Positions 2,990-55,034 of a stretch of 64,000 bases of DNA are shown in pieces. This DNA comes from Mizuhopecten yessoensis (taxonomy: Eukaryota). Location: contig NW_018406268.1 in NCBI RefSeq assembly GCF_002113885.1, forward strand, positions 1,575-65,574, in the 5' to 3' direction. The translations under genes and the position numbers were made by a program. Position 1 is the first letter of the stretch; every line of letters begins with the position of its first letter. Below the pieces are notes generated by a model, which saw only the letters and a list, made by a program, of their open reading frames with translations, was not told the origin of the DNA and did no database searches.

Positions 2990-5900
2990 AGCTTGAATTT
3001 TTCAATTGACCTTGGTGTTGCAGCAATTCTCCTACGCATATAGCTGTCAGATCCCTCATTATCTCTGTGTTTTAGTCCTGACGTGACAAATGACCTCGGT
3101 GTAGCAGCACTCCTATCCAGATAGCTATCAGACCCCTTATTATCTTTGTGTTTTAGTCCTGACGTGACAATTGACCTCGGTGTTGCTGCACTCCTCCTCA
3201 ACGATGCATATCACAACCCTCAATATCTTTGTGTTTTAGTCCTGATGTGACAATTGACCTCGTTGTTGCAGCACTCCTACCCAGATAGCTGTCACATCCT
3301 CATTATCTTTGTGTTGTAGTTGAGACGTTTCAATTGACCTCGTTGTTGCAGCACTCCTCATAGTCCGATGCATATCACAACCCTCATTATCTTTGTGTTT
3401 TAGTCCTGATGTGACAATTGACCTCGTTGTTGCAGCACTCCTACCCGGATAGCTGTCAGATCCCTCAATATCTTTGTGTTTTAGTTGTGACGTTTCAATT
3501 GACCTCGGTGTTGCAGCACTCCTCCTTCTCCGATGCATATCAGCTCTCTCATTATTGTGACTTTCATTACTTGACGTGTCAACTGACTTCGGTGTTGTAG
3601 CAATAGTCCTTCTCCGATGCACATTAGATCCCTCATTATTGTGACTTCCATCACTTGGCGTGTCATTTGATCTCGGTGTTGCAGCAATTCTCCTTCTCCG
3701 ATGCATATCAGATCCCTCTTTATCTTTGTGTTTTAGTTGTGACGAGACAATTGACCTCGGTGTTGCAGCATCCATCCTACTCCGATGCATATCAGATCCC
3801 TTTTTATCTTTGTGTTTTAGTTGTGACGAGACAATTGACCTCGGTGTTGCAGCAATTTTCCTACCAAGATAGCTATCAGATTTCTCATTTACTTTGTGTT
3901 TTAGTTGTGAAGTGTCATTTGACCTCGGTGTTGCAGCAATTCTCCTACTCAGATCGTTATCAGTTTCCTCATTATCTTTGTGTTTTAGTTGGGAGGTGTC
4001 ATTTGACCTCGGTGTTGCAGCACTCCTACCCAGATAGCTATCAGATCTCTCATTAACTTTGTGTTTTAGTTGTGACGTGTCATTTGACCTCGTTGTTGCA
4101 GCAATTATCCTACTCAGATAGCTATCAGTTTCCTCATTATCTTTGTGTTGTAGTTGAGACGTTTCAATTGACCTCGTTGTTGCAGCACTCCTCCTAGTCC
4201 GATACATATCATAACCCTCATTATCATTGTGTTTTAGTTCTGATGTGACAATTGACCTCTTTGTTGCAGCACTCCTACCCAGATAGCTGTCAGATCCCTC
4301 AATATATTTGTGTTTTAGTTGTGACGTTTCAATTGACCTCGGTGTTGCAGCACTCCTCCTACCCAGATAGATATCAGATTACTCATTATTGTGACTTTCA
4401 TCACTTGACGTGTCATTTGTCCTCGGTCTTGCAGCAGTCCTCTTACCCAGATAGATATAAGATCCCTCATTATCTTTGTGTTTTAGTTGTGACGTGCCAT
4501 TTGACTTCGGTGTTGTAGCAATAGTCCTTCTCCGATGCATGATAGAATCCTCATTACTGTGACTTCCATCACTTGAGGTGTCATTTGATTTCGGTGTTGC
4601 AGCACTCCTCATAGTCCGATGCATATCACAACCCTCATTATCTTTGTGTTTTAGTTGTGACGTGCCATTTGACTTCGGTGTTGTAGCAATAGTCCTTCTC
4701 CGATGCATGATAGAATCCTCATTATTGTGACTTCCATCACTTGACGTGTCATTTGATTTCGGTGTTGCAGCACTCCTCCTACCCAGATAGATATCAGATT
4801 CCTCATTATTGTGACTTTCATCACTTGACGTGTCATTTGACTTCGGTGTTGTAGCAATAGTCCTTCTCCGATGCATGATAGAATCCTCATTATTGAGACT
4901 TTCATCACTTGACGTGTCATTTGACTTCGGTGTTGCAGCAATTCTCCTACTCAGATCGCTATCAGTTTCCTCATTATCTTTGTGTTTTAGTTGTGAGGTG
5001 ACAATTGATCTCTTTGTTGCAGCACTCCTACCCAGATAGCAGTCAGATCGCTCAATATATTTGTGTTTTAGTTGTGACTTTTCAATTGACCTCGGTGTTG
5101 CAGCACTCCTCCTACTCCGCTGCATATCAGCTCCCTCATTATTGTGACTTTCATTACTTGACGTGTCAATTGACTTCGGTGTTGTAGCACTAGTCCTTCT
5201 CCGATGCATGATAGAATCCTCATTATTGTGACTTCCATCACTTGACGTGTCATTTGATCTCGGTGTTGCAGCAGTCCTCCTATCCAGATAGATATCAGAT
5301 TCCTCATTATTGTGACTTTCATCACTAGACGGGTCATTTGACCTCGGTGTTGCAGCACTCCTCCTTCTCCGATGCATATCAGCTCTCTCATTATTGTGAC
5401 TTTCATTACTTGACGTGTCAATTGACTTCGGTGTTGTAGCACTAGTCCTTCTCCGATGCATGATAGAATCCTCATTATTGTTACTTCCATCACTTGACGT
5501 GTCATTTGACATCGGTGTTGCGGCAGTCCTCCCACCCAGATAGATATCAGATCCCTAATTATCTTTGTGTTTTAGTTGTGACGAGACCATTGACCTCGGT
5601 GTTGCAGCACTCATCCTACTCCGATGCATAGCAGATCCCTCCTTATCTTTTTGTTTTAGTTGTGACGAGACAATTGCCCTCGGTGTTGCAGCACTCCTCC
5701 TACTCCGATGTATATCAGCTCCCTCATTATTGTTACTTTCATTACTTGACGTGTCAATTGACTTCGGTGTTGTAGCACTAGTCCTTCTCCGATGCATGAT
5801 AGAATCCTCATTATTTTGACTTCCATCACTTGACGTGTCATTTGATTTCGGTGTTCCAGCACTCCTCCTACCCAGATAGATATCAGATTCCGACGAGACA

Positions 5901-7850
5901 ATTGACCTCGGTGTTGAAGCACTCATCCTACTCCGATGCATAGCAGATCCCTCCTTATCTTTTTGTTTTAGTTGTGACGAGACAATTGACCTCGGTGTTG
6001 CAGTGTCATTTGACCTCGGTGTTGCAGCACTCCTACCCAGATAGCTGCCAGGTCCCTCAATATCTTTGTGTTTTAGTTGTGACATTTCAATTGACCTCGG
6101 TGTTGCAGCACTCCTCCTACTCCGCTGCATATCAGCTCCCTCATTATTGTGACTTTCATTACTTGACGTGTCAATTGACTTCGGTGTTGTAGCACTAGTC
6201 CTTCTCCGATGCATGATAGAATCCTCATTATTGTGACTTCCATCTCTTGACGTGTCATTTGATCTCGGTGTTGCAGCAGTCCTCCTATCCAGATAGATAT
6301 CAGATTCCTCATTATTGTGACTTTCATCAGTTGACGTGTCATTTGACCACGGTCTTGCAGCAGTCCTCTTACCCAGATAGATATAAGCTCCCTCCTTATC
6401 TTTGTGTTTTAGTTGTGACGCGACAATTGACCTCGGTGTTGCAGCACTCCTACCCAGATAGCAGTCAGATCGCTCAATATATTTGTGTTTTAGTTGTGAC
6501 GTTTCAATTGACCTCGGTGTTGCAGCACTCCTCCTTCTCCGATGCATATCAGCTCTCTCATTATTGTGACTTTCATTACTTGACGTGTCAATTGACTTCG
6601 GTGTTGTATCAATAGTCCTTCTCCGATGCATGATAGAATCCTCATTATTGTGACTTCCATCTCTTGACGTGTCATTTGATCTCGGTGTTGCAGCAGTCCT
6701 CCTACCCAGATAGATATAAGATCCCTCATTATCTTTGTGTTTCTTTGTGTTTTAGTTGTGACGAGACCATTGACCTCGGTGTTGCAGCACTCATCCTACT
6801 CCGATGCATAGCAGATCCCTCCTTATCTTTTTGTTTTAGTTGTGACGAGACAATTGACCTCGGTGTTGCAGCACTCCTCCTACCCAGATAGCTATCAGAT
6901 CTCTCATTAACTTTGTGTTTTAGTTGTGAAGTGTCATTTGAACTCGGTGTTGCAGCAATTCTCCTACTCAGATCGCTATCAGTTTCCTCATTATCTTTGT
7001 GTTTTAGTTGTGACGTGTCAATTGACTTCTGTGTTGCAGCAATCTTCCTACTCAGATAGCTGTCAGATCCCTCATTACCTTTGTGTTTTAGTTGTGACGT
7101 GTAATTTGACCGCGGTGTTGCAGCAATTCTCCTACTTCGATGCATATCAGATTCCTCATTATTGAGACTATCATCACTTGACGTGTCAATTGACTTCGAT
7201 GTTGTAGTAATAGTCCTTCTCCGATGCATGATAGAATCCTCATTATTTTGACTTCCATCACTTGACGTGTCATTTGACATCGGTGTTGCGGCAGTCCTCC
7301 TACCCAGATAGATATCAGATCCCTAATTATCTTTGTGTTTTAGTTGTGACGAGACAATTGACCTCGGTGTTGCAGCACTCCTCCTACCCAGATAGCAATC
7401 AGATCCTTCATCATCTTTGTGACTTTCACCACTTGATGTGTCGTTTGACCACGGTGTTGCAGCACTATCAGATGAGATATGGTCAACTTTCCAACGTCTC
7501 CAATATCTACCCTCTGGATCGCCCCGTACACGAATATCTGTCCCATCATTTTATGTTGTTAATTTTTTCCGGGGGATCCTATGATGACCTTTTTGTACCG
7601 GAATTACGGTACATTGTCCAAGCTCTTCGAGGTTCCGAAACACCCACAATCTCCTATTATCGGCCGAAAACCAGATTTCATTCCTTTTGACAACAGTTAT
7701 AGGCAGTATGTCCGATATACTACACTTTCCTGTCAAAAGGGCGTCCAATGTTTCACCGATATGTGTATCGGCATGAATGGATTTTTTGTAGAATACATTG
7801 TTGATAGAATCCTGACTAAATCGTATTTCACTCGGTCGAAGTTTTAACAT
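2990..7850 (-). pseudogene. Gene B1: ParB/Srx-like domain + ~50 basic 28-aa repeats, disrupted
   Basis: MLKLRPSEIRFSQDSI...ADNRRLWVF from ATG 7850. AAA>TAA at 7553-7551; the frame continues NDGTDIRVRGDPEG. TAG at 7325-7323 and 5557-5555, a 10-bp duplication frameshift at ~6732-6751, and TAA at 4381-4379. The C-terminal tail is deleted and the repeat is joined to the 3' flank at ~3000. Confidence 0.85.
3000..7465. repeat. Coding-derived 84-bp (some 81-bp) tandem repeat, ~50+ units with higher-order blocks
   Basis: ttgacctcggtgttgcagca recurs about every 84 bp; the minus-strand translation is SAATPRSNDTSQLKHKDNEGSDxYLGRR-like. Confidence 0.95.
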
Positions 7851-7891
7851 TTTCTCGCTGCCTGACAATGTAAATCAAGATCAATGCATTA

Positions 7892-10155: not shown

Positions 10156-10192
10156 TTCTGGGAACCAGCACGCTAGTTGTAGTTTCATTTTC
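10156..10192. promoter_or_regulatory. GAS (TTCTGGGAA, 10156-10164) + ISRE (AGTTTCATTTTC, 10181-10192) pair upstream of gene B
   Basis: Exact consensus matches. Both are kept at 31734-31770; GAS only at 51090-51098. Confidence 0.35.
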
Positions 10193-11601: not shown

Positions 11602-11827
11602 NNNNNNNNNNNNNNNNNNNNNNNNNNNNNNNNNNNNNNNNNNNNNNNNNNNNNNNNNNNNNNNNNNNNNNNNNNNNNNNNNNNNNNNNNNNNNNNNNNN
11701 NNNNNNNNNNNNNNNNNNNNNNNNNNNNNNNNNNNNNNNNNNNNNNNNNNNNNNNNNNNNNNNNNNNNNNNNNNNNNNNNNNNNNNNNNNNNNNNNNNNN
11801 NNNNNNNNNNNNNNNNNNNNNNNNNNN
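11602..11827. other. Assembly gap (226 N)
   Basis: N run; the paralogous interval 33206-33333 contains a (TG)n(AG)n microsatellite. Confidence 0.99.
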
Positions 11828-12981: not shown

Positions 12982-15673
12982 TTACTCCGTAATTACTTCA
13001 GTATGATCATAAACAGAGCTTAAATCATTGAGGGATTTACCAATCATTCTTGGCATCGTATTGTCCAGGAGTTGTCGATCCTCTATAACAATCGCAGCGA
13101 TTTCGGATTTTGTTGATTTCTGGAAAGCCCAAAGACGCCTGTTTCCGTCGATAACACTCATTGCTGTTTCGTCTTGCCAAACAACGATGGGCGGTATATT
13201 TCGACATTCCAGATTTTCAGAAACCAGTTCATTGACGAGAGTCCTTACGTTAACTCCTGAATGATCTCCTGAAGAAAAGGTCATTGGAATAACATCTTTG
13301 GTGAATTTAACACTCATCGGGTCAATGTGCGTAACATCCGGGGCCTTGTGCCAGTAGCCTCCTGGTTCCGCGTCGTCTTTTATCCCGACAGAAACACCAC
13401 GATTTTCTGACGATCTTTTCATTGAGTCGATATAAGAGACCTCTTGGAAAGAAATCTCTTTACATCTGCCTGGAAGAAAGGAACGAATTTATGTTATATG
13501 ATGAAATATTCGTGATAGTCATAGCGGTAACATATATACTATATACGGGGGAACATCCAAGAAGGTTAATAGACCTGGACAGATTGAAAAAAACTAGGGT
13601 AGAAATATTAACAACTAACGTAAATATATATCAAACCTTAGTTTGGTTTCCATCTGGTTGTGTTTCGATTTTAGCAATATTGTAATGTTGTTTTACTTTA
13701 ATGTAATGAAAACTACAAACAGCATTCGGACAGCAAAGTATATAAAACGATTCTACTGGGTATTCGTCCGCTTCAATATCCCACCCTGACCATTTGAAAA
13801 GAATTTTCTTGTGATAGAGGATGGATGTATTTTCGAATGAAAGGGTCATACTATTAACCTTGCCTCTGGTACTAGAGTCAATATAAGCATACACAAATGT
13901 GAGTGACCTATATGGTAATTAAACTGCATGAGCTATACAGAGGATACTTAATGGTTTCCCATTGAAAAAACATATATATCTCACTAGTATGGCAGAATAT
14001 CGATATTTTTCTTTAGGGAAAAGTACAAGTGAAAATATCGGTAATGTTTATCCTACCATAGGAGTGAAACCATTACATTTTCTGTGTTTTATTTATTTAA
14101 TATTACTTACAACAACGAAAATGTCACTGCATCAAAACATTTGGGCTTATAATAAAAATCTTAAGTGCCATAAAGTAATGATGTCTTGCTTGATAACAAG
14201 TCTGAGCGTCATTTCTGATTGGTTACCCAGTGAAATTTTACAGGTATCTTCTATTTTTGATCAGAATTTCTTACATTAATAATATAGATTACGAAGGCAA
14301 ATGTATACATTAACATACGTAGAAAAGATGTCAACAGAAAATCTGCGACTTTGAATGGGGTGAATAGAAAGTGGCGTTCTGATTGGTCAATTTCAAAAGT
14401 GACATAGTCATCCATCCAAAACAACTGTATAATAATCTTGGGGGAGACGGTGGTTACTGTGGCCCATTTTAATTTAGCCTATGTTATCTGTTCAAATTTA
14501 TGTGTAAATATAACATTTGAAAGAGAATTTCATAAAATAATAGCAAAATGACAAACACATCGGTATTTAAAGAATTAATAGAACCTTTTCTGTCAGGATA
14601 TTGTGCAGCTGAAAGTACTGCTCCCTTGGGGGAAGTTCGGACAGATATTCTGGGATAGATTCGGCATATAAATGACGTCATTAAGTACGCAACGTCAGAT
14701 TTTCCTGACACTGTCAGGACTTTCCACGTGTTGCCATTGCCATTGCCAAATCTACCCCAATATCATTAGCCGAACATGACCCATATTCATATTTAGACAA
14801 ATTATTTTATTACAGGAAAAAAAAGCTAAGGTATATATTATAATTAATGTACCATCTTGAGAAGTTGTCTGTGTGGTACATTTATAACATTACATAAATA
14901 TTTTTTGAGGGGGTATTTTAAATATTTCGGAGTAATTCGGGTTATCAAAAGTTTACAAAGCTAGAGAGAGGTCAGATCATAATGATTTTTCTACCATCCT
15001 AAAGCTAACTTTTCCCCTTTTATTGAGTTTTCCACACTATTGTATTTTTCATGTGAATGTTCCGTCTAGTCAATGGTCTGCTAAGATCCTAAAAATTGTG
15101 AATATATGCTCAAGAAACAAAATATCAGAGGTAGTCGAACTTAGCCTGGGGCCGCACTCTGTCCAGTCTTTCCTACCAGTAATATTGCAATATTTGTGTT
15201 TATAGTTTATAGTTTATGCATATTCATTATTTTAAACATTCTCTAAACAACAATAGCTGAAACAAGTCATTTGTACGAATATAATCTCCCTTTCCCCGTG
15301 TGTGCTTGATGTCGCAAACATATCAACGATTTACCATCACAAATCGCAAAGGTAAGAACATACCTAGTCTTTCCAAGTGTCTGAAAATCCAAAGACGACG
15401 GTTGTCAGCGGTAATCCAACGAGTCTTCTTCCCGCCTACCAATATATCCCCATCTGTCTCCTCGTCTTCCTCCTGTTTTAAACTTATCTCCGGAAGTGAT
15501 GTCATTGACAGTCGACCCTCCATTATATCGTCTAGGGTATCGCCAATGGTCATGTGTCCGTGTCCAGACCGCCGCCGAAAACGATGGTAGACTACCTTCT
15601 GACTAAAACAGATGTCAGACGGTCTTAATTTTGACGGTTTCGTATTTTCTGACAAAGACAATGATACCTCCAT
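12982..15673 (-). CDS. Gene C1: tandem double ParB/Srx-like domain protein, 265 aa; join(15673..15364,13469..12982)
   Basis: Donor CTAG|GTATGT and acceptor ctttcttccag|GC (phase 1) give RHLERLG|RCKEISFQEV, matching the unspliced paralogs (LEELGQCTEI). Domain 1 motif TADNRRLWIF; domain 2 motif VIDGNRRLWAF. Confidence 0.9.
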
Positions 15674-15722: not shown

Positions 15723-15816
15723 TATTTATACTGTATTATCACGAGTCGGCAAACGATTTCAGAAAGTATCTTTTTCGAAACCCAATAAAGAATTTACAGA
15801 ATCGAAACCGAAACTG
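15723..15816 (-). promoter_or_regulatory. C1 promoter: TATAAATA (15730-15723) and ISRE/IRF-E GAAACCGAAACTG (15804-15816)
   Basis: Matches GAAANNGAAACT ~130-145 bp upstream of the ATG; conserved in all three units. Confidence 0.7.
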
Positions 15817-17210: not shown

Positions 17211-19427
17211 TTACTGAAGCTCAGAGCAAATTATTACCTCACAAGAAAAGATTGTTCGTCTGCGAAGTAAATATTCGTCTGCTAGCTAGATTCAGGTGAT
17301 GATCACACAGAAAGAACTTTTTTTCTATTCTAGAAAGCCGCCATCAAAGCATTGCAGAGAACGCCATCACAAATACCTGAAAAAACACAGCCTACCTCAT
17401 ATAGTAATGGTAAGGACCAAGGATCTATTGAAAACAGCGAAAGTGTGACATATCTACCTATTAAAAGGCAATGAACAGGAATCTTGATAACTTTGTGGTA
17501 TTGTTAAATCAAACACAGCTCAAAAGATCCCTGTTTAGAGAACACATGTAACAAAATTAAAGCCTGACCCCAAAACCGGGTCGTGAACTAATAACATAAT
17601 TTTTGTTCGTTCATTCCTTGGTAAAAGTAACGATTTGGCGTATCAAAGGTAGTGTTGTGTTTGCATGCGAAACAAAAAAGGAAGAATAGGGAAAGAGGTA
17701 CATTTGGGAGCCATCCCTGTTCTTTAAAAAAAAAAAAGGAAAAAGAGTGTTTCAGTTTACCTTCATATGGGGGTATATGACCTCCTAAATTGACTTTAAA
17801 CCCTCAAAATGTTAGAGGCTTGCTATAGAAAGAGGAAAGAATTTGGTAATTACGTCTGATTTTACCACAAGATTTTGTGTCTCGTAAAATAAACTGGAGA
17901 AAGAATAAAAGTATAAAAGCAGTAAGTTTATATGTCTGTCCTACACAGTGGTATAGTCCATTGATCATTTGATAAAATTCTATCTCAATGCACAAATTTA
18001 TAAAATAACGAAGGAAGATTTAATATTTCTTTATTCGATAAAAAGGTATGAACATATATAGTTTACATATTTTGGTCCATCAAATGTAAGTTCCTTATAA
18101 CGATTGGGAACATTGAATTATCATCCTCGTCATTTGTATCCAATGTGGTTGTTAAAATTAACACATTCGTTTGTCAAAACTTTTACTCATTACTATTTGT
18201 ACTTATTTGTCTTTACGTTTATATTAAATAAAGTGACACTCTTATGTGTACGTAGGTTTTCGATATGCAGGTGTAATTACATACAGGTGTGGATTACGGA
18301 TTACGAATGTCTCCGGGGCGGTATATTTGCTGCAATATCGTATAAGATGCTTACCAGTAACATTGCACAAAGACCCCGATTGAATTACACAAATTGTGGT
18401 AAAATTTGTTAGTAATTCATGCTCAATCTTCATTAACAAACATTTAATGATCTCATTTGTGTAATTAAAATATATGTTACACACTAAACACAAAGGTAGC
18501 CATTTTTTACAAGCTGTTTAATGATTAATATAATTACCACAAGCACTGTTGTAAAGTGTAACACTAAATATTTTTGACACATTATTCAATTATTACTGTT
18601 TCACTCCTTGTATCAACACTGTCGTGTACCTGTGTACGGCAACTGTTGATTTGTGTCTTTTTTTGTTTACACTTCGACTCATTTCAGTAAATCAACAGAG
18701 CATATTGGTAATGTGTTGTTTTCCTCGACTAATTGTTATTTTGTCTATGAAATAATCTGATAAAAGAAGAGTAAATAATGACTATTTCGAATTTTTGTTT
18801 AGTTTATATATTTATAAGTACAGAAACAGCAAATTTGTACTTACTAATTACAGATATCAGTCGAAGCGTGAATATGAAACGAGACAAAACAACCGTGGCC
18901 GTACACAGCTATACGACAGTGATCAAATGATCATGCCCAACAAGATAAGCCACCACTGCAGGTCATCCTCATCGTTACTCACATCAGCACATGCCTTGAG
19001 GCTAGGGTCATATCAGCTGAAATTAGCCGTTGGTTATTAATAAGTTCTCGTCGGAAATCAAATACACTAGGAAAATGTTGTTGAACTTGTTGAGAGAACC
19101 AGGAGAAGAGCCATGCTTGTGTATTTTCTGCAAGTTACTGCTGTTGGGCCACGATATTGAAGGAGTGACTGAAAGGTGGAGTGATAGTGTAAAAAGAATT
19201 TGCCCAGGTAGCGAACGATCTGGAAAAGGGGAATTTACTCTTGCTGGTCCATATCCTCGGCTATAACAAATCAAAATATTATGAAAGTATCGTATGTAAA
19301 CCATTGCACAGACAAAGCATAAAACAAAATAATGTAAAATACCATGCAAGCTTTAGGTGTATTCATATTTGCTGCTGTTCGATAAAACTAAATAATATGA
19401 AAGGAACATTCTTAAAGGCGCTATCAA

Positions 19428-19914
19428 TTAATCAAACGTGTCAGAAAATTGACCTTTTTGATGTCGATGCGCCCCTCGTCTTTGTGATCTTCTGTTCTCA
19501 GAGCGCCGGGACCCCAACCTTGCGGAACCTGAATTCGGCCTAGGTGTACCAACTGTAGCAGGAGGTTGCAGTGTCCTCCAGTGATTCCACCTTCATCGCC
19601 GCGTACCCAAACTGTTTTCCCGCCATGTCTTGCTGTTAGTTTTTCTTCCGTCAAACCGTCATACACTTATCGGACGGGAATATCTGTACATTTCCCGAAT
19701 CTCTCAAGCATCTGAAACACCCACAGCCTCCTGTTATCATGTGTGTACCAGACTCTACGGCTTTTGACGACCCTGATTTCTGGTATATCAGATATTTTAA
19801 GATGTCATCCAATGTTTCGCCGATTGGCTTATTAGGATGATCTGAGTTTCTGGCAAAAACATTATTGATAGAATCCTGGGTAAAACGTATTTCACTCGGT
19901 CGTAGAGTCGTCAT
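19428..19914 (-). pseudogene. Gene A2, frameshifted
   Basis: MTTLRPSEIRFTQDSI from ATG 19914. A 13-nt deletion (tctgttgacagga) at ~19805 and a 1-nt deletion at ~19585; DNRRLWVF is present in the shifted frame. Confidence 0.88.
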
Positions 19915-22777
19915 TTCTCCTTTTAGGACAATGTAAGTATGAATCACCCGTATTACAGAAATCGATATATAGCTTTGAGGGAAATGCATATATCGATCAG
20001 TTACCCGGTATAGGATAACGTCATTAACGATAGGAAATTAGATGCATGTTAGCCATGATAAATTGTATAAAATGCATGCACTAGGATGATTTATTTATAT
20101 ATAACTCCTATACATGTATCATCAGATAAAAGGATTTGATACTTTTATATGTAGTATTAATGGTTATGAAATATGATAACTATGAGTAACTATGAGCTTT
20201 ACACGACATATATTTGTTTAGAAAAGTAATGGGATATTTATTCCTTAAATTTAGTTTAGATAATCACAGAATACTAATAGATTTTATTAATATTTGCTAT
20301 TTTGAAAAAAAGTCCTAACATATTAGATGGGATTGGAAGTCTCATTGTCCTATATTCACATCGAAAAATGGAACGTTCCAAAAGCGTTTTGCTTGATTTG
20401 TCATAATAAAATTTAATTAAGAATCAATAAATTGAATCACTCTTATATGGACATATGTTTATGTTGGTTGCTTAAGCATTTGCTAGAATGCATCGCTAGA
20501 CCTATGTAATTTCTGTCGTCCTTTTTAGCAGATTTCATGATGTATCTCTAATACGGCATATTTACACAAAAGTTGTAAAATATCAACTTGACCATGTTTG
20601 TGATTCTGGCACTAACATATGTCAGTAAGCAAGCTTTACGAAATGATATTTTCAATAATTTGATATGCTAGACAGAAAAATATAAAATGGACATTTGTGA
20701 TATCGTAAGTGATTAAACAGATAATGTATAAACATATCATCACATAAGGAAGGGGGATAACTACACAATTAATAACACCCGAAATTGGAGCTCTTCTTTG
20801 TGGTTATAACTAATGTAGTAGTACTCTTTACCTTAAAGGAAAATTTACTGTTCACATGTAGTGAACTTCTGTCTGTTGGTGGAATGAGTGATCCAATGTT
20901 CAAGATAGATGTATATGAAGACATACAAATATTAGAATCAGATAAATAGATAGGTATGGTATATTTCTTGAAGGTGATCGTTTTGATTCATATTAAATCT
21001 TAGGGTATGCATACATTGTTTTCATCTTATCATATAGGAAGTTGTCACTTATCATTACCTTACATTAATGTGTCTTTATGGAAAAGAAACTTGATACAAC
21101 TACGCCAAGGAATCTATGTATAAAATCAAATATCAGATTTACCTTTGATTGCGAGTGTTGATAACCAGTGGATATTTCAAACAAAACCCACAAAAAAAGT
21201 CGGAGATACTATAGTTATACCGTTTGTGTTTAATCTAGTGTAAATGTATTATGTATATTTTGTGGATATTTCTAACAAAATCTAGAAAATGTGTCATAAT
21301 GTGTTTATAGCTTCTGTGTTAAATTAATGTATAAGTCTAAATGTAGTATGTATATTTTGTGTAAAATTCAAACAAAAAGTAGAAAAAGTGTGATGTATTA
21401 TAGCTATAACTTCTGTTTACAATCTTCTGTAAAATGTAAACATCAGTTATGTATACTTTATGGATATTTCAACAAAAGCTAGACAATATTGTGACATATT
21501 GTAGTTAGTTAGGATTATAAACTGGTTACTCACGTTGAAGATATTTTCATTTCAAACTACATATATCAAACATAACAATTATTATAGGACCACCGCACAT
21601 TTTATATCAAAAAAATTGTATCAAAATATCAGGTACAAAAGCAAATTATAAGTTGGTATTTGCAAATATCCATTAATGTTATAGTGGAATCATTTTTAAT
21701 CGAGCGTCTTAATATTTTTCCATATTTTCCAAAACTATATTGTATTCGATACGCAACTATCATATATCCAGTATACCGCAGTATTCGTTATGACTAATAA
21801 TAAAAGCATGTTGATATGTATTGTGTAAATACTCTGAATATATCTATTATTAGAACATTGCGTCTGACATTACTTGGAAGTACATAATGATCATAAATTC
21901 ACCTAAACGCCATGCCCTACTGAGCTATCGATCAATACATGAATAGAAAACCACACATGTGATACGTCTGTATCGAAAAGTCTGACTTACGTATTTTACA
22001 TATTATATATGCCAAATAAATAATAGTCAACGATATATACTATCGCGGGAATAGGGATCAAATTGACAGCAAATTGACATATAAAAAAGTGTTCGATGTA
22101 CCTAGTGTAAATGACGTAACGGCTACATCACGTGATTACGGCGCCAGATGTGGTATGATATTTGAGAGATATTGTTTATAAAGAATAAACAGTTTAAGAA
22201 TGACAAATATGTTTAAAAAGCAAATGTTATAGCTACTGAATCCGTTAAATGCTAAAAAAAAATGCAAAACCTGTTTTGGCAGAAATATTTAGAGGAGTGC
22301 AAACCAAAGCAAAATATTCATGATATTTCAAAGATAGCAATTGAATAATAACCTCTACCGGAAGTTATTGACTCTTACTTGTCACAATGCACAGGGTCAT
22401 TGCAAGCTTTAACTACAATGATGAACAACAAAATGTACGTTAAACTCAATTAAGACAAATATTCTTTTGCCGAAAGTATTTCGTCATAACTTGAATCCAA
22501 TGTTTTTAATGATTATTTACAGCCACATAGATGTTTATCCAAGTGAATCGTATTTTACAAGAATATGTTTTAGTCTAAAACTCCAAGAAGAAACAAAATA
22601 CTACTGGACAAATTAACAAATCGACATTGTTCCTGTTTATGACACGATACATACCATCCTTTAAAGTATATTATTTAAACGCAACTCAAAACTTTACTAG
22701 AAAACATTTCGGTATTTTTTTACCGATAAAAATGTCCGGTACAGAAAGATAAAAGTTCGGCATGCCAATAAACCCTT

Positions 22778-25242: not shown

Positions 25243-25779
25243 ATATAAGAAAATATGGGGGTCAAATTCGTTACAGTTTGTCCAATACTCCTCTGTCTCA
25301 GATCAATCACAACCATCTTTATTTGTAAACTTCTCTCATTTCTTATTTATATCAATCCGCCTAGTCTTGGTAGTACTTATCTCCCTTGTATTGAAACTCT
25401 TACTCTTGTACCTGGAATGCATTTTGCAAAAGGTTAACATGATATTCATGTACAAGAATAATTATTTGTTGTAGCCAAAATTGGCAAATTTCTTCAAGAA
25501 TTTATAGACACTTTTTCCTTTATTGCTATATTTCTTAATTTACCCCGGAACACTTTCGACTCTAAGTTTATTTTTCAACCATAGTATCACTGATGCGCTC
25601 AAAGGTTTATATCGTGCAGTAGAAATATTTACATTGTTTGGTTTTCTGCATCGATTATCACTTAATGTTTCTAAATGTACGTCATTTCTCAGTATTTCTG
25701 TATCTTTACAATATTCGTCTTTGTGCAGTTTACTTGTAACTTGTACCCTCTTGGTTTCTGCCATCGGCCTCATCATGAT

Positions 25780-27335
25780 GATCATTATCATGGTCTGGGT
25801 CGTACTCATCTGCCTCATTTTGATAGTCATTGTCTTGGTCTGGTTACTCATCTGCCACATTTTGATAGCCATTATCTTGGTCTGAGTTGTACCAATCTGC
25901 CTCATCTTGATAGTCATTATCTCGGTCTTGGTCCTCTTCTACCTCATCTTGATATTTATTATCTTGGTCTGGGTCGTAAACATCTGCATTTTTTTGATAG
26001 TCATTATTTTGTTCTGGGTCGTACTCATCTGCTTCATTTTGAAAGTAATTTTCTTGGTCTGGGTCGTAACAATCTGTCTCATCTTAATTATCATTTTCTG
26101 TGTCTCGGTCCTCATCTGCCTCTTATTGATAGTCATTTTATTGGTCTGGGTCGTATAAATCTGCCTCATCTTGATAGTCATCATATTGGTCTTGGTACTC
26201 ATCTGCCTCATTTTGACATTCATTATCTCGGTCTGGGTCGTATTCATCTGCATTATTTTGATAGTCATTTTCTTGGTCTGGGTCGTACCAACCTGCCTCA
26301 TCTTGATAGTCATTATCTTGGCCTTGGTCGTACCAATCAGCCACAATTTGATGGTCATTTTCCTGGTCTTGGTCGTACTCATCTGCCGCAAATTGATAGG
26401 CATTATCTTGGTCTGGGTCGTACTCATATTCCTCATCATGATGGTCATTATCCTGGTCTTGGTCCTCATTTGCCTCATCTTGATCATTATCTTGGTCTTG
26501 GTCCTTATCGTCCTCATCTTGATAGTCATTATCCTGGTCTTGGTCGTACTCATCTGCCACAATTTGATAGGCATCATCTTGGTCTGGGTCATACTCATAT
26601 GCCTCATCATGATGGTCATCATCCTGGTTTTGGTCCTCATTTGCCTCATCTTGATCATTATCTTGGTCATGGTCGTACTCATCTGCCACAATTTGATAGT
26701 CATTATCTTGGTCTTGGTCGTACTCATCTGCCTCAATTTGATAGGCATTATCTTGGTCAGTGTCGTACTCATCTGCCACAATTTGATAGTCATTATCTTG
26801 GTGTTGGTCGTACCAATCTGCCACAATTTGATGGTCATTTTCCTGGTCTGGGTCGTACTCATCTGCCGCAATTTGATAGGCATTATCTTGGTCTGGGTCG
26901 TACTCATATGCCTCATCATGATGGTCATTATCCTGGTCTTGGTCCTCATTTGCCTCATCTTGATAGTCATTATCCTGGTCTTGGTCGTACTCATCTGCCA
27001 CAATTTGATAGGCATCATCTTGGTCTGGGTCATACTCATATGCCTCATCATGATGGTCATCATCCTGGTTTTGGTCCTCATTTGCCTCATCTTGATCATT
27101 ATCTTGGTCTGGGTCGTACTCATCTGCCACAATTTGATAGGCATTATCTTGGTCTGGGTCGTACTCATCTGCCACAATTTGATAGTCATTCTCCTGGTCT
27201 GGGTATACCTCTACCTCCTCTTGATAGTCATTCTTTAGGTCCTGGTACTCCTCCACGTCACCTGGATAGTCATTCTGTTGGCTTGGGTCGTACTCATCTG
27301 CCTCATCTTAATAGTCATTCTCTTGGTCTGGGTCG
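25780..27335 (-). repeat. 39-45-bp coding-type tandem repeat encoding hyper-acidic DNDYQxxADEYDPDQ units (~35 copies)
   Basis: In frame with B2 exon 2; interrupted by TAA at 27310-27308 and 26140-26138 and further distal stops. Confidence 0.9.
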
Positions 27336-28729
27336 TACTCATTTATCTCGTCTCGGTATGTATTCCATTGGTATGAGTAGGACACGTCTCGTTCGTATTG
27401 ATTTTTAGTCTCTTGCTTTATGCAGTTCTCGTCACTTTCGTCTCGATCTTTGTTAACAAGGCTTTCGTGTGAGGAGTTATGTGCTTTCGTCTCAGGTTTC
27501 ATAGAACTGTTATAAAATATTAGAAAACACTGTATAATAAATGACCTTGTAGCTTTGTATACTTTATGCATGTAGTTTGATTTTTTATTACATACCAGGT
27601 TAATCCTACTCTAGTGATTCAGGTGGTTTCAAACAATGCCATACATATATTGTTCCAATCAGTTTCGTTCGGTTTATAAAACATTCTTAACAATCCGTGA
27701 AAAAGGATCAAAACGATTATGTTCTCTACTGTTTGCATTTCCGTCAGTCGAAAGATTGATCTTTGGTACAATTTGGGAAATTCCAGATATTGTTTATTTG
27801 ACATTTCGACATGATTGTCAGCGATTAATCAAACAATATAATAAAAGTAAAACTAAAACAGTTTTCAATAAAAAAAGATTCACGTGAAACTTTTGAATTA
27901 TTTCATTAAAACATTTTGAGTAATTGGTTGTATTAATACCATATACGATGGAAATATAAATAAAAAATAATGTTTGAAAGTTAACTTACCTATTAGCTAT
28001 TGATATGTTTTTAGTGATTCTGTTATCAGGGCACACGTCTGGTTTGTTGATTGAAGTCCGAACAACCGGTTTCACATGTAAGGGTGAATTACTTTGATAG
28101 GGATAAGACATGCCTTTGGCCGCAATGCTTGAAGACTGTTCATTTGGTCCCGGTATTGCAGCACTATTGCTTTGTCGATGCTTATAAGATCTCAACCGAT
28201 CATGGCTTTTGAGACCTGGTCTGCCATCATTGATGGTTATGAATTCTCTAGAAGGAATCTCGTTGCTTTCTGCGACCGTGATTTCAGTATATCCGTTTTC
28301 GTAATCCTCGTCATCAAAGAAGGATGATTGGTCGTCAGAACACAAGTCATCAGATGTCTGGTCATCATTCCAATGTCTCCAATGATAACCACCTGGATCG
28401 CGCCGTACACGAATATCTGTCCCGTCATTTTTTGTTGTTAATTTTTTCCGAGGAATCCTACGACGGCCCTTTTGGACCGGAATTTCGGTACATTGTCCAA
28501 GCTCTTCGAGCTTCCGAAACACCCACAATCTCCTGTTATCGGCCGAGTACCAGTTTTCATTCATATAGACGACAGTTATAGGCGGTATCTCCGAGATATT
28601 ACACTTTCCTGTCAACAGGGCATCCAATGTTTCACCGATATGTGTATCGGCATGATTGGTTTTTTCGTGGAAAACATTACTGATAGAATCTTGACTAAAT
28701 CGTATTTCACTCGGTCGTAGAGTCAACAT
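27308..28729 (-). CDS. Gene B2: ParB/Srx-like domain + acidic linker; join(28729..27990,27506..27308), 312 aa, truncated at the start of the acidic repeat
   Basis: MLTLRPSEIRFSQDSI...SADNRRLWVF. Donor AATAG|GTAAGT (phase 2) and acceptor ttttataacag|T join in frame to SMKPETK...EYDPDQENDY*; the stop is CAA>TAA in repeat context. Confidence 0.75.
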
Positions 28730-31012: not shown

Positions 31013-33221
31013 TAGATACAAAACCTGACACAAAACTTTATACACAGAGTAGTAAATGTTCGGGCCTAGATTATTCCTTTCAATGTATTTAATTGTAGAG
31101 TGCAATGTTTTTTCGTGTTATGGTCAGAGCTCAGATATTTCTTCACTTTTAATAATTGAATATCATATTGGCACACACAGAGGTACCTCTAATACAATCT
31201 AACCATACAATTCCTAGGACAATAACGTTTACCTTGCATACATAATAATTTTTCATTTTTCATTTTTTTTTTAAATGAACAAAAATCAATTCAAATTAAT
31301 TTGATTTTACAGCAGGTTTATTTCACAAAAATCATAACTGTTGAAAAATTAGAAACATAAAATATTATTTAAAGCACTATAACAGTCCATATATTAATGC
31401 TGAGTCTTTAAGTCTTGTTATTTCACATTTGTTTCATTTCGATCATATTAGTGTCAAGCATGAACTGAAACACAATCTCGTTAATGACAGACAATTATAT
31501 GCCCGTCTCTTATTTCAGTTCACATATACGTACATTGTAAAAATGTTTTAACAAAAAGATAAAAAATCTATCTTAATATAAACCAAAATACATACCCACA
31601 AATGATACGCACTACTGCATTCATCACAAAGGTTGTAAAATATACACCTAACGTTGTTTAATCTGCATACAGTAGAAGTGTACACTATATATTTTGACAA
31701 TGTACGACCTAAAAACATTATATGATATCCAACTTCTGGGAACCACCACGCTAGTTGTAGTTTCATTTTCGGTAATTCTTGATATAGTAGCATCGTTAGT
31801 ATATCTTCGCTCGTGAAAACACAAGACAGCACTACCCAATATAAATGTTATGTTTATACATTCCTACCTGACTCAATGTAACAATGTCACGACTAGATAC
31901 ACGCTAATAATTACCCAAGGTCATACTTCTACTTCTTATATGCCATCCTAACCCATGTCAGTGTATTTAAGACGAAAAAACCCAAAAGTCTTACCCAAGT
32001 GATGTAATTTGAAACTAACTACATACCATCTTTAATCTTTACTAAAGTTAATTTATTTTAATACTAGATATAAGTCATGTTTGTAAAAAATCATAAGGCT
32101 CGTTTACCCGTCCCTCTAAGATTTTATAGCATAGCTGTATTTGAATAAATGGAAAAATAATGTTTAACCTAAAACCTATTTGCCCAGTGCATGATAATGT
32201 ATTTCGATACTAAAATACATTATTGTTGTATTTTTGCCATATTGAATGTGTAAAATCAAACGAGATACATGTCATAATTTCCCAAATTAATGTATTTTCA
32301 ATACTGGATCTATGCCACCTTTAGCGAAGTGAATGTACCTTAACACAAGATGCACACTATCTTTACAAACATGAACAAACTTCAATTCACAAAATACATT
32401 AAATTGCAGAAGTGTTGTCAGTCATCGTCTTCGCTTATTCCACTACTACATTCCATTATCCGATAATTGGCTGATTATTGATCACATTATCACAGCTCTG
32501 TAATATACACTTTACTCATTATTAATTTGAGATTATCCATTACTCCTTTATCTAATTCATGTAATTGAAGGGTTTTATGAAACTCTCCTTCTGTTCGACC
32601 TTTTTGGATTAAGGCCTTGTGGGATCCCTTACATCACCGATGAGTCCTAGTAGAACGAAATAGCTTAACGGTGCATTTTTTGGCTTACTGTATCTGTTAA
32701 CATATTGTATAGATGCACTCCCTTTATGCTAACAGAGAAGAGGGTATTTATACACTATTCCTCAACTATCAATAACTTCTTGTATTCAAATCTTTTTCCT
32801 GAACTGGTAAAATAACCACCGCTTAGAACCGGGAACATTTCAAACATTATTAACGAGGAAGGTCAAGGACGTCGAGGATTAATTTTACTATTTGATAATA
32901 CATATATGAACTCCAATGATCTCACCAATAAATACTTGTTTTACTTGAGAAATGTATGTTCTCTCAAAGCAAAAAAGGCATTGTTTAGATTTAATACTTT
33001 TTTATTGCCATAATGCAACTGAATTTGGCACAAGTCATACAATTTATATAAAGCTCTTTCCATAAATATAACAATCATATATACAACAAACTTACAAGAT
33101 GGCACCCTCAAAATTACTTTAAAAATAAGTTATCGAAATGACAAATTGACGTACATGCGTTCACTCATTCACACACCAATACACACAAACTCACACGCGT
33201 TTATACGTATGTAAACATATG

Positions 33222-34744: not shown

Positions 34745-37386
34745 TTACTCCGTAATTACTTCAGTATGATCATAAACAGAGCTTAAATCATTGAGGGATT
34801 TACCAATCATTCTTGGCATCGTATTGTCCAGGAATTTTCGATCCTCTATAACAATCGCAGCGATTTCGGATTTTGTTGATTTCTGGAAAGCCCAAAGACG
34901 TCTATTTCCGTCGATGACACTCATTGCTGTTTCGTCTTGCCAAACAACGATGGGCGGTATATTTCGGCATTCCAGATTTTCAGAAACCAGTTCATTGACG
35001 AGAGTCCTTACGTTAACTCCTGAATGATCTCCTGAAGAAAAGGTCATTGGAATAACATCTTTGGTGAATTTAACACTCATCGGGTCAATGTGCGTAACAT
35101 CCGGGGCCTTGTGCCAGTAGCCTCCTGGTTCCGCGTCGTCTTTTATCCCGACAGAAACACCACGATTTTCTGACGATCTTTTCATTGAGTCGATATAAGA
35201 GACCTCTTGGAAAGAAATCTCTTTACATCTGCCTGGAAGAAAGGAACGAATTTATGTTATATGATGAAATATTCGTGATAGTCATAGCGGTAACATATAT
35301 ACTATATACGGGGGAACATCCAAGAAGGGTAATAGACCTGGACAGATTGAAAAAACTAGGGTAGAAATGTTAACAACTAACATGAACATATATCAAACCT
35401 TTGTTTGGTTTCCATATGGTTGTGTTTCGATCTTAGCAATATTGTAATGTTGTTTTACTTTCATGTAATGAAAACGACAAACATCATTCGGACAGCAAAG
35501 TATATAAAACGATTCTACTGGGTATTCGTCCGCTTCAATATCCCACCCTGACCCTTTGTAAGTTTTTTTCTTGTGATAGAGGATGGATGTATTTTCAAAT
35601 GAAAGGGTCTAAATATTAACCTTGACTCTGATTGTAGAGTCAATATGAACATACACAATGTGAGTTATCTATATGGTAATTAAACTGCATGAGCTATACA
35701 GAGGATACTTAATGGTTTCCCGTTGAAAACCATATATATCTCAATAGTTTGGCAGAATATCGATATTTTTCTTTAGGGCAAAGTACAAGTGAAAATATCG
35801 GAAATGTTTTTTCTGCCATAGGAGTGAAACCATTACATTTTCTGTGTTTTATTTATTTAATATTACTTACAACGACAAAAATGTCACTGCATCAAAACAT
35901 TTCGGATTATAAAAAAAATCCTAAGTGCCATAAAGTAATGATGTCATGCTTGATAACAAGTCTGAGCGTCATTTCTGATGGGTTAACCAGTGAAATTTTA
36001 CAGGTATCTACTATTTTTGATCAGAATTTCTTACATGAATAATATAGATTACGAAGGCAAAAGTATACATTAACATACGTAGAAAAGATGTCAACAGAAA
36101 ATCTGCGACTTTGAATGAGGTGAATAGAAAGTGCCGTTCTGATTGGTCAATTTCAAAAGTGACATAGTCATCCATCCAAAACAACTGTATAATAAGCTTG
36201 GGGGAGACGGTGGTTACTGCGGCCCATTTTTATTTAGCCTGTGGTATCTGTTCAAATTTATGTGTAAATATAACATTTGAAAGAGAATTTCATAAAATAA
36301 TAGCAAAAACACATCGGTATTTAAAGAATTAATAGAACCTTTTCTGTCAGGATATTGTGCAGCCGAACGTACTGCTCCCTTGGGGGAAGTTCGGACAGAT
36401 AGTCTGGGATAGATTCGGCATATAAATGACGTCATTAAGTACGCAACGTCAGATTTTCCTGACACTGTCAGGACTTTCCACGTGTTGCCATTGCCAAATC
36501 TACCCCAATATCATTAGCCGAACATGACCCATATTCATATTTAGACAAATTATTTTATTATAATTAATGTACCATCTTGAGAAGTTGTCTGTGTGGTACA
36601 TTTATAACATTACATAACTATTTTTTGAGGGGGTATTTTAAATATTTCGGAGTAATTCGGGTTATCAAAATTTTGCAAAGCTAGAGAGGGGTCAGGTCAT
36701 AATGATTTTTCTACCATCCTAAAGCTAACTTTTCCCCTTTTATTGAGTTTTCCACACTATTGTATTTTTCATGTGAATGTTCCGTCTAGTCAATGGTCTG
36801 CTAAGATCCCAAAAATTGTGAATATATGCTCAAGAAACAAAATATCAGAGGAAGTCGAACTTAGCCCGGGGCCGCACTCTGTCCAGTCTCTCCTACCAGT
36901 AATATTGCAATATTTGTGTTTATAGTTTATGCATATTCATTACTTTAAACACTCTCTAAACAACAATAGCTGAAACTAGTCATTTGTACAAATATAATCT
37001 CCCTTTCCCCGTGTGTGCTTGATGTCGCAAACATATCAACGATATACCATCACAAATCGCAAAGGTAAGAACATACCTAGTCTTTCCAAGTGTCTGAAAA
37101 TCCAAAGACGACGGTTGTCAGCGGTAATCCAACGAGTCTTCTTCCCGCCTACCAATATATCCCCATCTGTCTCCTCGTCTTCCTCCTGTTTTAAACTTAT
37201 CTCCGGAAGTAATGTCATTGACAGTCGACCCTCCATTATATCGTCTAGGGTATCGCCAATGGTCATGTGTCCGTGTCCAGACCGCCGCCGAAAACGATGG
37301 TAGACTACCTTCTGACTAAAACAGATGTCAGACGGTCTTAATTTAGACGGTTTTGTATTTTCTGACAAAGACAATGATACCTCCAT
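34745..37386 (-). CDS. Gene C2: double ParB/Srx-like domain protein, 265 aa; join(37386..37077,35232..34745)
   Basis: Same splice sites as C1; near-identical protein. Confidence 0.9.
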
Positions 37387-37516: not shown

Positions 37517-37532
37517 GAAACTGAAACTGAAA
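37517..37532. promoter_or_regulatory. C2 ISRE GAAACTGAAACTGAAA
   Basis: Three GAAA cores at 6-bp spacing, same offset as in C1. Confidence 0.7.
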
Positions 37533-52390: not shown

Positions 52391-53648
52391 AGGCATTGTT
52401 TTGATTTAATACTTTTGTATTTCCATAATGCAACTGGATTTGGCACAAGTCATACAATTTATATAACGCTCTTTCAATAAATAAACAATCATATATACAA
52501 CAAAATTACAAGAGTACGAAATATTAAAGTTCAAGTAGAATCCTAATGTGGTAATAATGAAATCGGACCATGTGGTTGCTCTTTCTCCATGCAAACGGAA
52601 CTAGTGATTATCTGTTTGCTGTTCATAATGTTCTGCCGTTCAATTGTTCATCACTTTCTGTGCTAATAACGTCCTCTTGTTCACTCCTTGCCTGCTGGTG
52701 TTTCTGTTTCCACTAGTCGGCTGTCATAGAGAGAAAGACCGAGCACAAGGTCCAAATACATTTTCGCATACAATTATATTTATAAAGCGATTGTATATAA
52801 TACTATGATAATCGGATATCGATAGACATGTGAGAGAGGGAAAGAAGGGAGGAGAGAGGGATTGTAATTAAAATCGATAAGAATCATGAATGTATTGCCG
52901 AGTGTGCATGAAAATCCAAATGTTTTTTTGTTCCGAATTATTTGTATCGCCAAAAAGAAGTAGGTTCAGAGTAAGAGGTACACGTATGTATTTGTTAAGC
53001 CCACGATAAAGTTAAACTTAAGGCATTTAGGGCATTGACATTTTGTCTTAACATTTTGTTATACAGTATTTCATTTTTAGACATAAAATGGATTATTAAG
53101 AATATTGTATATATAATACTTAATAACTAATCAATATGTAAATGTTAAACCAAATGTTAATCTATCACCTACTTCATTAAATCAAATTAAAAACGTAATA
53201 ACAAATAAATTTTAAATAAAATAATATGTGGTATGATTTGCATATTGTATGCTAGCAAAACGAACGGTAAAAAGTAAGGGTAATTTAAAATGCACACATG
53301 TAACATGTGGTATCAAAGTATTGGTAAATATCACATACGCATCATACCTACGTAATCTTTATTTACATATGTCACGCGCATGCTATGAAATATATATAAG
53401 ACATATATTCTAGTTTGCTTGTTTACATCATTAATGTGTTATATTTGATCTTTTTTAAATATATGCTTAAGTTTTATTTTTTATTATCATGGATGTGCTT
53501 ACAAAAACCACAAACTCCTTTATTAATAAAAAGAAACTATTCATAAGATTATTTCTATAAATGGATTTGATAGTTATCACCGTTATCGCATAGTTTAATT
53601 TTTTAATTTTCGCCTGTATATTACAGAACTGACCACATACTGAGCTCA

Positions 53649-54886
53649 TTACTCCGTAATTATTTCAGTATAATCATAAACAGAGCTTAAATCATTGAGG
53701 GATTTACCAATCATTCTTGGCATCGTATTGTCCAGGAGTTGTCGATCCTCTATAACAATCGCAGCGATTTCGGATTTTGTTGATTTCTGGAAAGCCCAAA
53801 GACGCCTATTTCCGTCGATGACACTCATTGCTGTTTCGGCTTGCCAAACAACGATGGATGGTATATTTTGGCATTCCAGATTTTCAGAAATCAGGTCATT
53901 GACGAGAGTCATTACATTGACCCCTGAATGATCTCCTGAAGAAAAGGTCATTGGAATAACAGCTTTGGTGAACTTAACACTCATCGGGTCAATGTGCGTA
54001 ACATTCGGGGCCTTGTGCCAGTAGCCACCTGGTTCTGCTTCGTCTTTTATCTCGACAGAAACACCACGATTTTCCGACGACCTTTTTATTGAGCTGATAT
54101 AAAACACCTCTCGGAAAGAAATCTCTTTACACCTGCCTGGAAGAAAACAACGCATTCATGTCATAAACGGGGAAAACCCAAGAAGGTTCATAGACCTGGG
54201 CAGATTGAACAAAATAGGGCCGACATTAAAACAACGAATATAAAACAAATATCAAACCTTATTCTAAAGTTCGGTTTCCATCTGGTTGTGTTTAGATTTT
54301 AGCCGGAGTAGGTTGTCGAACTTACTCATGGGCCGAACTATGACCAGTCTCTCCTACTAGTAATATTGCAATATTCGTGTTTGAATTTTAAAGGAATTAA
54401 AGTTGATGTATATTCATTACTTCAAAAATCTCCAAACAACAGTAGCTGAAACTAATCATTTATACGAATATAATCTCATTTTCCCCGTGTGTATTCCGAA
54501 CCATTTGACATTGTTTGCTTGATGCCGCAAATATATCAACGATTTACCATCACAAACCCCAAAGTTAAGAGCATACCTAGTCTTTCCAAGTGTCTGAAAA
54601 TCCAAAGACGACGGTTGTCCGCGGTAATCCAACGAGTCTTCTTCCCGCCTACCAACGTCTCCCCACCTGTCTCCTCGTCTTCCTCCTGTTTTAAATCTAT
54701 TTCCGGAAGTGATGTCATTGATAGTCGACCCTCCATTATCTCGTCTAGGGTATCGCCAATGGTCATGTGTCCGTGCCCAGACCACCGCCGAAAACGATGG
54801 TAGACTACCTTCTGACTAAAACAGATGTCAGACGGTCTTAATTTAGACGGTTTTGTATTTTCTGACAAAGACCATGAAACCTCCAT
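53649..54886 (-). CDS. Gene C3: double ParB/Srx-like domain protein, 265 aa; join(54886..54577,54136..53649)
   Basis: Donor G|GTATGC, acceptor ttttcttccag|GC, 440-bp intron; both motifs intact. Confidence 0.9.
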
Positions 54887-55018: not shown

Positions 55019-55034
55019 GAAAGCGAAACTGAAA
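55019..55034. promoter_or_regulatory. C3 ISRE GAAAGCGAAACTGAAA
   Basis: IRF-E consensus GAAA(G/C)(T/C)GAAA; same offset as in C1/C2. Confidence 0.7.

Follow-up and report, generated by a model that had tools for sequence, protein, structure and literature searches.

To our knowledge, sulfiredoxin (Srx) is the only well-known animal protein of the ParB/Srx fold, which outside Srx is regarded as essentially prokaryotic. The subject of this report is gene C, a spliced gene on the minus strand of a 64-kb stretch of DNA from the scallop Mizuhopecten yessoensis (contig NW_018406268.1, positions 1,575 to 65,574), whose 265-residue protein is predicted to carry this fold twice. The whole stretch of 64,000 nucleotides is called the window below; it is built of an AT-rich unit of ~22 kb that occurs three times. 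The closest described system is the Tox-ParBL1 domain, which was defined computationally by its predicted ParB fold, a conserved N-terminal [ST] that classical ParB lacks, and a motif [NT][RT][RT], mostly N-R-R, at the position of the GERR motif of ParB or the DGHHR motif of Tox-ParB (Zhang, de Souza, Anantharaman, Iyer and Aravind 2012; PMC3482391). In that work Tox-ParBL1 forms the C-terminal domain of polymorphic toxins of the type V secretion system (T5SS) and RHS types, encoded together with SUKH or Imm44 immunity genes, members are already reported in "several metazoans", and the family to which gene C belongs represents a eukaryotic acquisition of the fold separate from that of Srx (Zhang et al. 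2012; PMC3482391). In its architecture, gene C represents a new variant of this computationally described domain family, found in an animal host.

A second point of reference is ToxB, the nearest toxin of this fold to have been characterised, a CdiA C-terminal ATPase toxin of the ParB-CTPase fold with a GNHR motif, which binds ATP with a Kd of ~87 µM, hydrolyses ~300 ATP per hour as a monomer, and has its nucleotide pocket capped by its immunity protein (bioRxiv 10.64898/2026.05.05.722872). ToxB forms a polymorphic-toxin tip and, like gene C, has a ParB fold accompanied by neither helix-turn-helix (HTH) nor dimerisation domains. Its GxxR phosphate motif, GNHR, has Asn in second place; by eye, from the residue numbers of the preprint, it can be set beside GNRR in domain 2 of gene C, whereas domain 1 lacks the Gly. 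ToxB is nevertheless detectable with PF02195 whereas the gene C family is not, its monomer is capped by a separate protein whereas gene C consists of two fused domains, and binding and hydrolysis of ATP, demonstrated for ToxB, are presumed for gene C. The N-terminal CTP-binding domains of ParB, Noc and KorB, in turn, provide the best structural matches to domain 2 (Z ~10 over ~90 residues) and bear the box II GERR where gene C has NRR, that is, with Asn in place of Glu. Gene C differs from them in its below-threshold scores and in having no HTH, C-terminal dimerisation domain or ParA motif, and any dimer-like closure would be intramolecular. Srx is likewise structurally similar (Z 8-10 to domain 2), but it is a single-domain, ATP-using monomer with a catalytic Cys that gene C lacks. 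The explanation that we favour overall, at a probability of roughly 0.6, is that gene C encodes an expressed, two-copy Tox-ParBL1 protein that would form a compact unit binding nucleoside triphosphate (NTP) and would act in innate immunity driven by interferon regulatory factors (IRFs).

Kinship with bacterial toxin tips

Standard profiles barely register the protein. The sub-threshold sequence matches in Pfam and NCBIfam were limited to ParB_N, Noc and parB_part, all at the GNRR region, with PF02195 scoring 14.8 bits against a cut-off of 26.3 and TIGR00180 scoring 15.8 bits against a cut-off of 58.45. Two N-type domains fill the 265 residues, in which neither an HTH, nor a C-terminal dimerisation domain, nor any other Pfam domain was found, and a search of the scallop genome with PF02195 returned no match. 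Since the fold-wide survey of 2025 searched with PF02195 at its gathering cut-off, the gene C family, which scores below it, lies outside the reach of that criterion.

A profile of the family itself (A2) gave matches in four of 401 Pseudomonadota genomes, with E values from 1.6e-11 to 4e-4. The strongest (1.6e-11) is the C-terminal tip of a 2108-residue two-partner secretion (TPS)/haemagglutinin-repeat (Fil_haemagg) protein. Next comes, at 3e-7, a short open reading frame (ORF) at the edge of its contig, then, at 2e-5, the tip of an RHS protein of 1385 residues and, at 4e-4, that of a PT-VENN protein with a SUKH-1 gene behind it. In these matches the NRR position reads DNRR, DHRR or DNTR, and the alignment contains blocks common to bacterial and scallop sequences (RF[ST]Q.S, PPI, DNRRL and KFTT.NGG..I.VR). 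A ShlB/FhaC transporter is encoded upstream of the haemagglutinin-repeat protein (L125:2912-10983), and in the other locus (L127:1637-3419) the PT-VENN protein with its ParBL1-like tip precedes a SUKH-1 (SMI1/KNR4) gene; judged by this gene content, both relatives sit in textbook toxin loci. Because the [ST] and NRR signature, the T5SS/RHS contexts and the SUKH gene all agree with the published definition, and because the sequences are akin to toxin tips, the gene C family matches the Tox-ParBL1 branch. An alignment of domain 2 (A4) run against the bacterial genomes gave 23 pattern matches and no confirmed relative.

The preliminary description of this locus had taken gene C for a ParB pseudo-dimer. 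What stands of that premise is the presence of two domains of the ParB/Srx fold; what does not is the family, which is the toxin-derived Tox-ParBL1 and not canonical ParB. Gene C also departs from the Tox-ParBL1 toxins themselves, in that it is a host gene devoid of any secretion or delivery part, contains the domain twice within 265 residues, bears an acidic insert in the first copy, belongs to a tandemly amplified bivalve cluster and has an IRF-type site in its promoter.

The family profile retrieves 3396 representative clusters at E<=1e-3, whose named members are proteins of bivalves, a chiton, an annelid and a tunicate, and the scallop genome alone accounts for 43 or more domain matches, spread over several clusters. 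Two or three domains in tandem occur in 34 of the 169 family members fetched, so that such arrays are not peculiar to gene C. In a Mactra antiquata protein of 784 residues (P0093), the family domain precedes an HSP70 (HSPA12-like; HSP70-12A) ATPase as an N-terminal fusion.

Two diverged domains in one chain

The family profile matches the gene C protein twice, at residues 13-149 (3e-44) and 148-264 (6e-27), and the two domains also recognise each other in a pairwise comparison (E 8e-4), by which the two halves of the protein are homologous, diverged tandem copies. The columns common to both comprise the P of RPS/DPM, the F-S/T motif, a His, P-I, and D-NRR-LW-F. The position of the phosphate motif of the fold is kept in both halves, with NRR where ParB has ERR; the triplets N91-R92-R93 and N213-R214-R215 do not vary among scallop C proteins, and S24 (FSQ, domain 1) and T160 (FTK, domain 2) occupy a position that is conserved across the family and the bacterial tips. 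Domain 1 is completed by a structured C-terminal extension (..NRG.SV.I....PGGYWH), which the single-domain A and B proteins encoded in the same cluster share, and domain 2 starts within ~4 residues of it, leaving no flexible linker. The earlier statement that domain 1 is followed directly by a diverged domain 2 is therefore borne out, as both are matched by the family profile across this short gap, while the gene picture needs correcting in that the intron lies inside domain 1 and not at the boundary of the two domains.

The other idiosyncrasy singled out beforehand, an acidic insert in domain 1, proved real as well. It comprises ~20 residues, is restricted to C-type proteins, and differs in length between scallop species. 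The residues that contact the base in ParB and ToxB are located 19-27 positions before the GxxR motif (bioRxiv 10.64898/2026.05.05.722872), so that, by analogy, the insert probably remodels the pocket of domain 1.

Structure prediction agrees with the assignment of the fold. The AlphaFold2 model of the whole protein (P0001, the query for all whole-protein analyses) has a mean predicted local distance difference test score (pLDDT) of 80.7 and a predicted template-modelling score (pTM) of 0.73, and the pTM of the ESM Atlas model is 0.77. All top Foldseek matches of the P0001 model are N-domains of ParB, Noc and KorB (nucleotide-bound), Srx, PadC and SbnI/SerK (E 1e-4, probability 1.0), and VIA-align superimposes domain 2 on ParB, Noc and Srx with a Z of ~10 and a root-mean-square deviation of 3-4 Å over ~90 residues. 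Domain 1, when modelled alone (pLDDT 85.4, pTM 0.81), retrieves the same protein list (Foldseek E 2e-2, probability >=0.98); in an exhaustive comparison with 48,161 representative chains of the PDB, it reached Z>=2 with 11, ten of which belong to the ParB/Srx superfamily, with a best Z of 6.6. Given the Z of ~10 for domain 2 and these ten superfamily members among the 11 matches of domain 1, both halves are predicted to have the ParB/Srx fold. The same models agree with the earlier view that domain 2 is the more canonical, more ParB-like half (Z ~10 as against up to 6.6). Its structural neighbours in the Atlas are PT-HINT and RHS C-terminal clusters at a template-modelling score (TM) of 0.67-0.76, to which it is closer than to canonical ParB_N at 0.58-0.60. 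A two-domain comparator was not found in the Atlas searches, and phmmer and profile searches of PDB sequences yielded nothing relevant to the protein. The global pTM values of 0.73 and 0.77 suggest that the two halves pack compactly.

Domain 2 is of a distinct lineage, distinguished by T-K in place of S-Q, by DGNRRLW and by a D..EFL helix. In a maximum-likelihood tree, all second domains fall into one group (support 100/97), whose members are the C-type second domains and those of a scallop group of long-linker paralogs, of the chiton Liolophura and of a Logan protein that is unplaced; the first domains of C-type proteins group with that of the chiton (support 98/93). Because the branches are long (1.47 for the lineage of domain 2), the tree calls for caution, but the simplest reading of these sequences, given that the chiton has the same pairing, is that the two-domain gene is older than the split between bivalves and chitons and that gene C is its compact scallop form. 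The long-linker paralog is encoded in a second scallop cluster on another contig (G000:C494:46005-89993, P0006-P0009), and has a long disordered linker and a shortened second domain. Its first domain groups with A/B-like genes and its second with that of the chiton, which suggests domain shuffling or gene conversion.

Expression, selection and the upstream region of three intact copies

Gene C is a real, expressed scallop gene of two exons. The splice signals of the first copy, C1 (donor GTATGT, acceptor ..TTCCAG), define a junction 15364|13469 at which a split Gly codon (G|GC) keeps the frame open, giving the 265 residues, and the NCBI protein LOC110451200 is 100% identical to the translations of both exons; a literature search found no mention of this locus. 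The splice, predicted at 15364/13469 from the letters of the sequence, is present as the exact joint (13468->15363, cut +1) in RNA-derived contigs of two studies, X4 (RNA-seq) and X3, which skip the 1894 nt flanked by CT..AC on the plus strand, and the RNA depth is 32-241 over the exons as against 0-6 over the intron. An interpretation of gene C as an ORF artefact was rejected on account of this spliced RNA. Since the X3 contig is C1-like whereas those of X4 bear variants typical of C2, RNA is made and spliced from at least two types of paralog. The protein has no obvious signal peptide.

The preliminary description had also held that splicing gives 265 residues in all copies without indels and that gene C is the only member intact in every unit; on both counts the data agree with it. 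C1, C2 and C3 have identical exon lengths (310 + 488 nt), GT..AG introns and the same split codon, with 0 stops and 0 indels. The Nei-Gojobori ratio of nonsynonymous to synonymous change (dN/dS), counted per exon and then summed, is 0.14 for C1-C2, 0.31 for C1-C3 and 0.44 for C2-C3; dN is below dS by Fisher tests (p 1e-4 to 5e-3), and none of the amino-acid differences touches a motif residue. The copies are 98.9% and 94.1% identical in exons as against 93.5% and ~80% in introns. They are thus three intact paralogs under purifying selection, and the only C-type genes in the scallop genome. Beside them lie decaying copies of the other gene types, namely B1 (7482-7853), with an in-frame TAA within the domain (..KKLTT*NDG..), and A2 (19424-19989), with a change of frame after ..ETLDDIL, which leave C as the only type intact in all three units. 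The ortholog in Pecten maximus has a phase-1 intron at the same position and a B-like gene 7 kb downstream.

The upstream regions of the three copies have a motif in common that resembles the interferon-stimulated response element (ISRE) to which IRFs bind. A GAAANNGAAAC site stands 131-133 bp upstream of every C start, the counterparts of the C1 motif being at 37517-37527 and 55019-55029, and there are six matches in total against 0.95 expected. Further ISRE-type GAAANNGAAAC sites form a second set on the minus strand (10182-10192, 31760-31770 and 52700-52710), once per repeat unit, in the stretch that separates C from B and distant from the start codons of both genes. The coordinates of the features are collected in the table.

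Table. Features of gene C in the window
Feature	Positions	Strand	Remarks
C1 exon 1	15364..15673	-	310 nt; ATG at 15673; residues 1-103 and first base of Gly104; most of domain 1
C1 intron	13470..15363	-	1894 nt, GT..AG, phase 1; inside domain 1, after ..LERLG
C1 exon 2	12982..13469	-	488 nt including stop; residues 104-265; last part of the domain 1 module, complete domain 2
C2 exon 1	37077..37386	-	310 nt
C2 exon 2	34745..35232	-	488 nt
C3 exon 1	54577..54886	-	310 nt
C3 exon 2	53649..54136	-	488 nt
Domain 1 motif D90-N91-R92-R93	15395..15406	-	at the position of ParB box II GERR
Domain 2 motif D211-G212-N213-R214-R215	13135..13149	-	sequence alignment
Domain 2 (residues 149-256), predicted ParB/Srx fold	13012..13335	-	model and structure search
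Acidic/basic insert in a loop of domain 1 (residues 67-83)	15425..15475	-	beta2-beta3 hairpin just before DNRR; low pLDDT
Putative TATA-like element TATAAATA	15723..15730	-	~50 nt upstream of C1 ATG; from sequence reading only
ISRE/IRF-type motif GAAACCGAAAC	15804..15814	+	131 bp upstream of C1 ATG

The introns measure 1894 nt in C1, 1844 nt in C2 and 440 nt in C3. That of C3 (54137-54576) can be aligned with that of C1 (13470-15363) at the intron ends only, with ~80% identity, which suggests that an insertion or deletion of 1.4 kb separates C3 from C1 and C2, possibly a mobile element in the latter two. Elsewhere in the window, the tails of the B genes (3000-7466, 25752-27342 and 45431-47086) contain long imperfect tandem repeats with ~75-85% identity between repeat units, which in B3 are translated as one ORF of 900 residues, and a run of 226 N is present at 11602-11827.

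Proposed function and its alternatives

What would a scallop do with two such domains in one chain? The favoured explanation starts from a domain that bacteria deploy as a warhead at the C-terminal end of CdiA, RHS and other polymorphic toxins, and that eukaryotes would have acquired long ago. Each half of the gene C protein would bind an NTP through its NRR motif, most likely ATP if the analogy with ToxB holds, and the protein might slowly hydrolyse it or transfer its phosphate. The two halves would form one compact unit, in which one half may shape or gate the pocket of the other, and the protein could then act in IRF-driven innate immunity either as an NTP-dependent effector or as the regulator of one. 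The immune role is suggested by the origin of the domain in toxins, by the lineage-specific expansion of the genes with birth and death of copies, by the fusion with HSP70-12A in Mactra, and by the conserved ISRE-type site in the promoter.

Several observations weigh against this explanation. The immune role is circumstantial, and the two raw-read RNA runs of 2026 (X21 and X24) yielded 0 and 1 gene C reads, which could mean either that the gene is silent in those samples or that sampling was at play. The analogy with the ToxB ATPase crosses subfamilies, as ToxB belongs to the branch detectable with PF02195 and not to ParBL1, and in the literature searched the paper of 2012 was the only description of Tox-ParBL1 found, with none later and no biochemistry. 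The type member of Tox-ParBL1 is NGK_2271 of Neisseria gonorrhoeae, yet the profile found no match at E<=0.1 in five Neisseriaceae genomes, picked via their uptake-sequence pattern and including one N. gonorrhoeae strain; it may be that those strains lack the toxin or that it lies beyond the reach of HMMER. In absolute terms, the structural match of domain 1 is weak (Z <= 6.6, Foldseek E 2e-2), and the evidence for the putative packing of domain 1 against domain 2 is the global pTM. Finally, the Q of the family is replaced by K in domain 2 (FTK as against FSQ) and domain 1 has its acidic insert beside the pocket, so that either half could be non-catalytic.

The alternatives differ mainly in how the two halves would cooperate. 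It is plausible that they close on a nucleotide like a ParB dimer. In its strictest form, this would be a head-to-head arrangement of the two domains resembling the CTP-closed N-domains of ParB, with one or two NTPs sandwiched between them, making the chain a nucleotide-gated switch. Such an arrangement would suit two homologous ParB-fold domains with intact NRR motifs and no flexible linker, the high global pTM in two predictors, the long conservation of the pairing, and the fact that domain 2 is matched best, in structure, by nucleotide-bound N-domains of ParB and Noc. However, Srx, SerK and ToxB are all monomers of the same fold, ToxB lacks Box III and the dimerisation elements, the Atlas contributed no two-domain comparator, and the shortened second domain of the long-linker paralogs, which is devoid of the helix-1 region, is hard to reconcile with a symmetric sandwich; we consider this arrangement unlikely. 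The preliminary description also proposed that gene C may be the core enzyme or regulator and A and B its variable partners, for or against which the analysis found nothing. The wider proposal of a single-chain ParB nucleotide gate, in which two ParBL1 domains would close on NTP in an IRF-induced antiviral switch or effector of molluscs, is more doubtful. Equally doubtful is an autoinhibited effector, whose degenerate half, most likely domain 2, would cap the pocket of the other, as iToxB caps ToxB, and so silence a toxin-like NTPase until an immune trigger frees it. The precedent is suggestive in that the immunity protein touches the bound nucleotide of ToxB and abolishes its hydrolysis, and a host would presumably have to restrain a domain derived from a toxin; the strong divergence of domain 2 (branch length 1.47), its Q-to-K change in the N-terminal motif and the loss of a central segment from the second domain of sister paralogs point in the same direction. 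Yet domain 2 is the more ParB-like half, retains the DGNRR, Thr and His positions, invariant among scallops, and most family members, being single-domain proteins, have no such lid.

It is also conceivable that no catalysis is involved and that gene C is a binder or scaffold for nucleotide, nucleic acid or protein, or even two uncoupled beads. The fold survey of 2025 expressly makes room for non-catalytic binders, and arrays of two to three domains have arisen time and again in the family, pointing to simple duplication. Neither NRR motif nor its flanks, however, vary at all in four scallop proteins and three paralogs, and the junction of the two domains is short and confidently modelled, with a high pTM; these features make such a passive role quite improbable. 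By far the least credible candidates are a sulfiredoxin-type repair enzyme and a ParB-type DNA clamp, both of which have the fold in common with gene C. The former was rejected because the position of the catalytic Cys in FGGCHR holds none, the protein reading ADNRR in domain 1 and DGNRR in domain 2, and the latter because there is no HTH; the missing C-terminal dimerisation domain and the scores of PF02195 and TIGR00180, far below their cut-offs, likewise speak against them.

With the assignment to Tox-ParBL1, a marine-invertebrate family that had no annotation is now tied to a bacterial toxin domain by both sequence and structure. Its two-domain form appears to have been kept in molluscs since before the split between chitons and bivalves, and in the scallop it has an expressed and selected member behind an IRF-type promoter site. 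Given the ATPase activity of ToxB, gene C offers a compact, soluble-looking candidate with which to approach the biochemistry of ParBL1 and the taming of a toxin domain by animals. Should the single-chain gate prove true, it would be the first intramolecular NTP gate of the ParB type in eukaryotes, and would open a new branch of animal innate immunity that arose from a bacterial toxin warhead.

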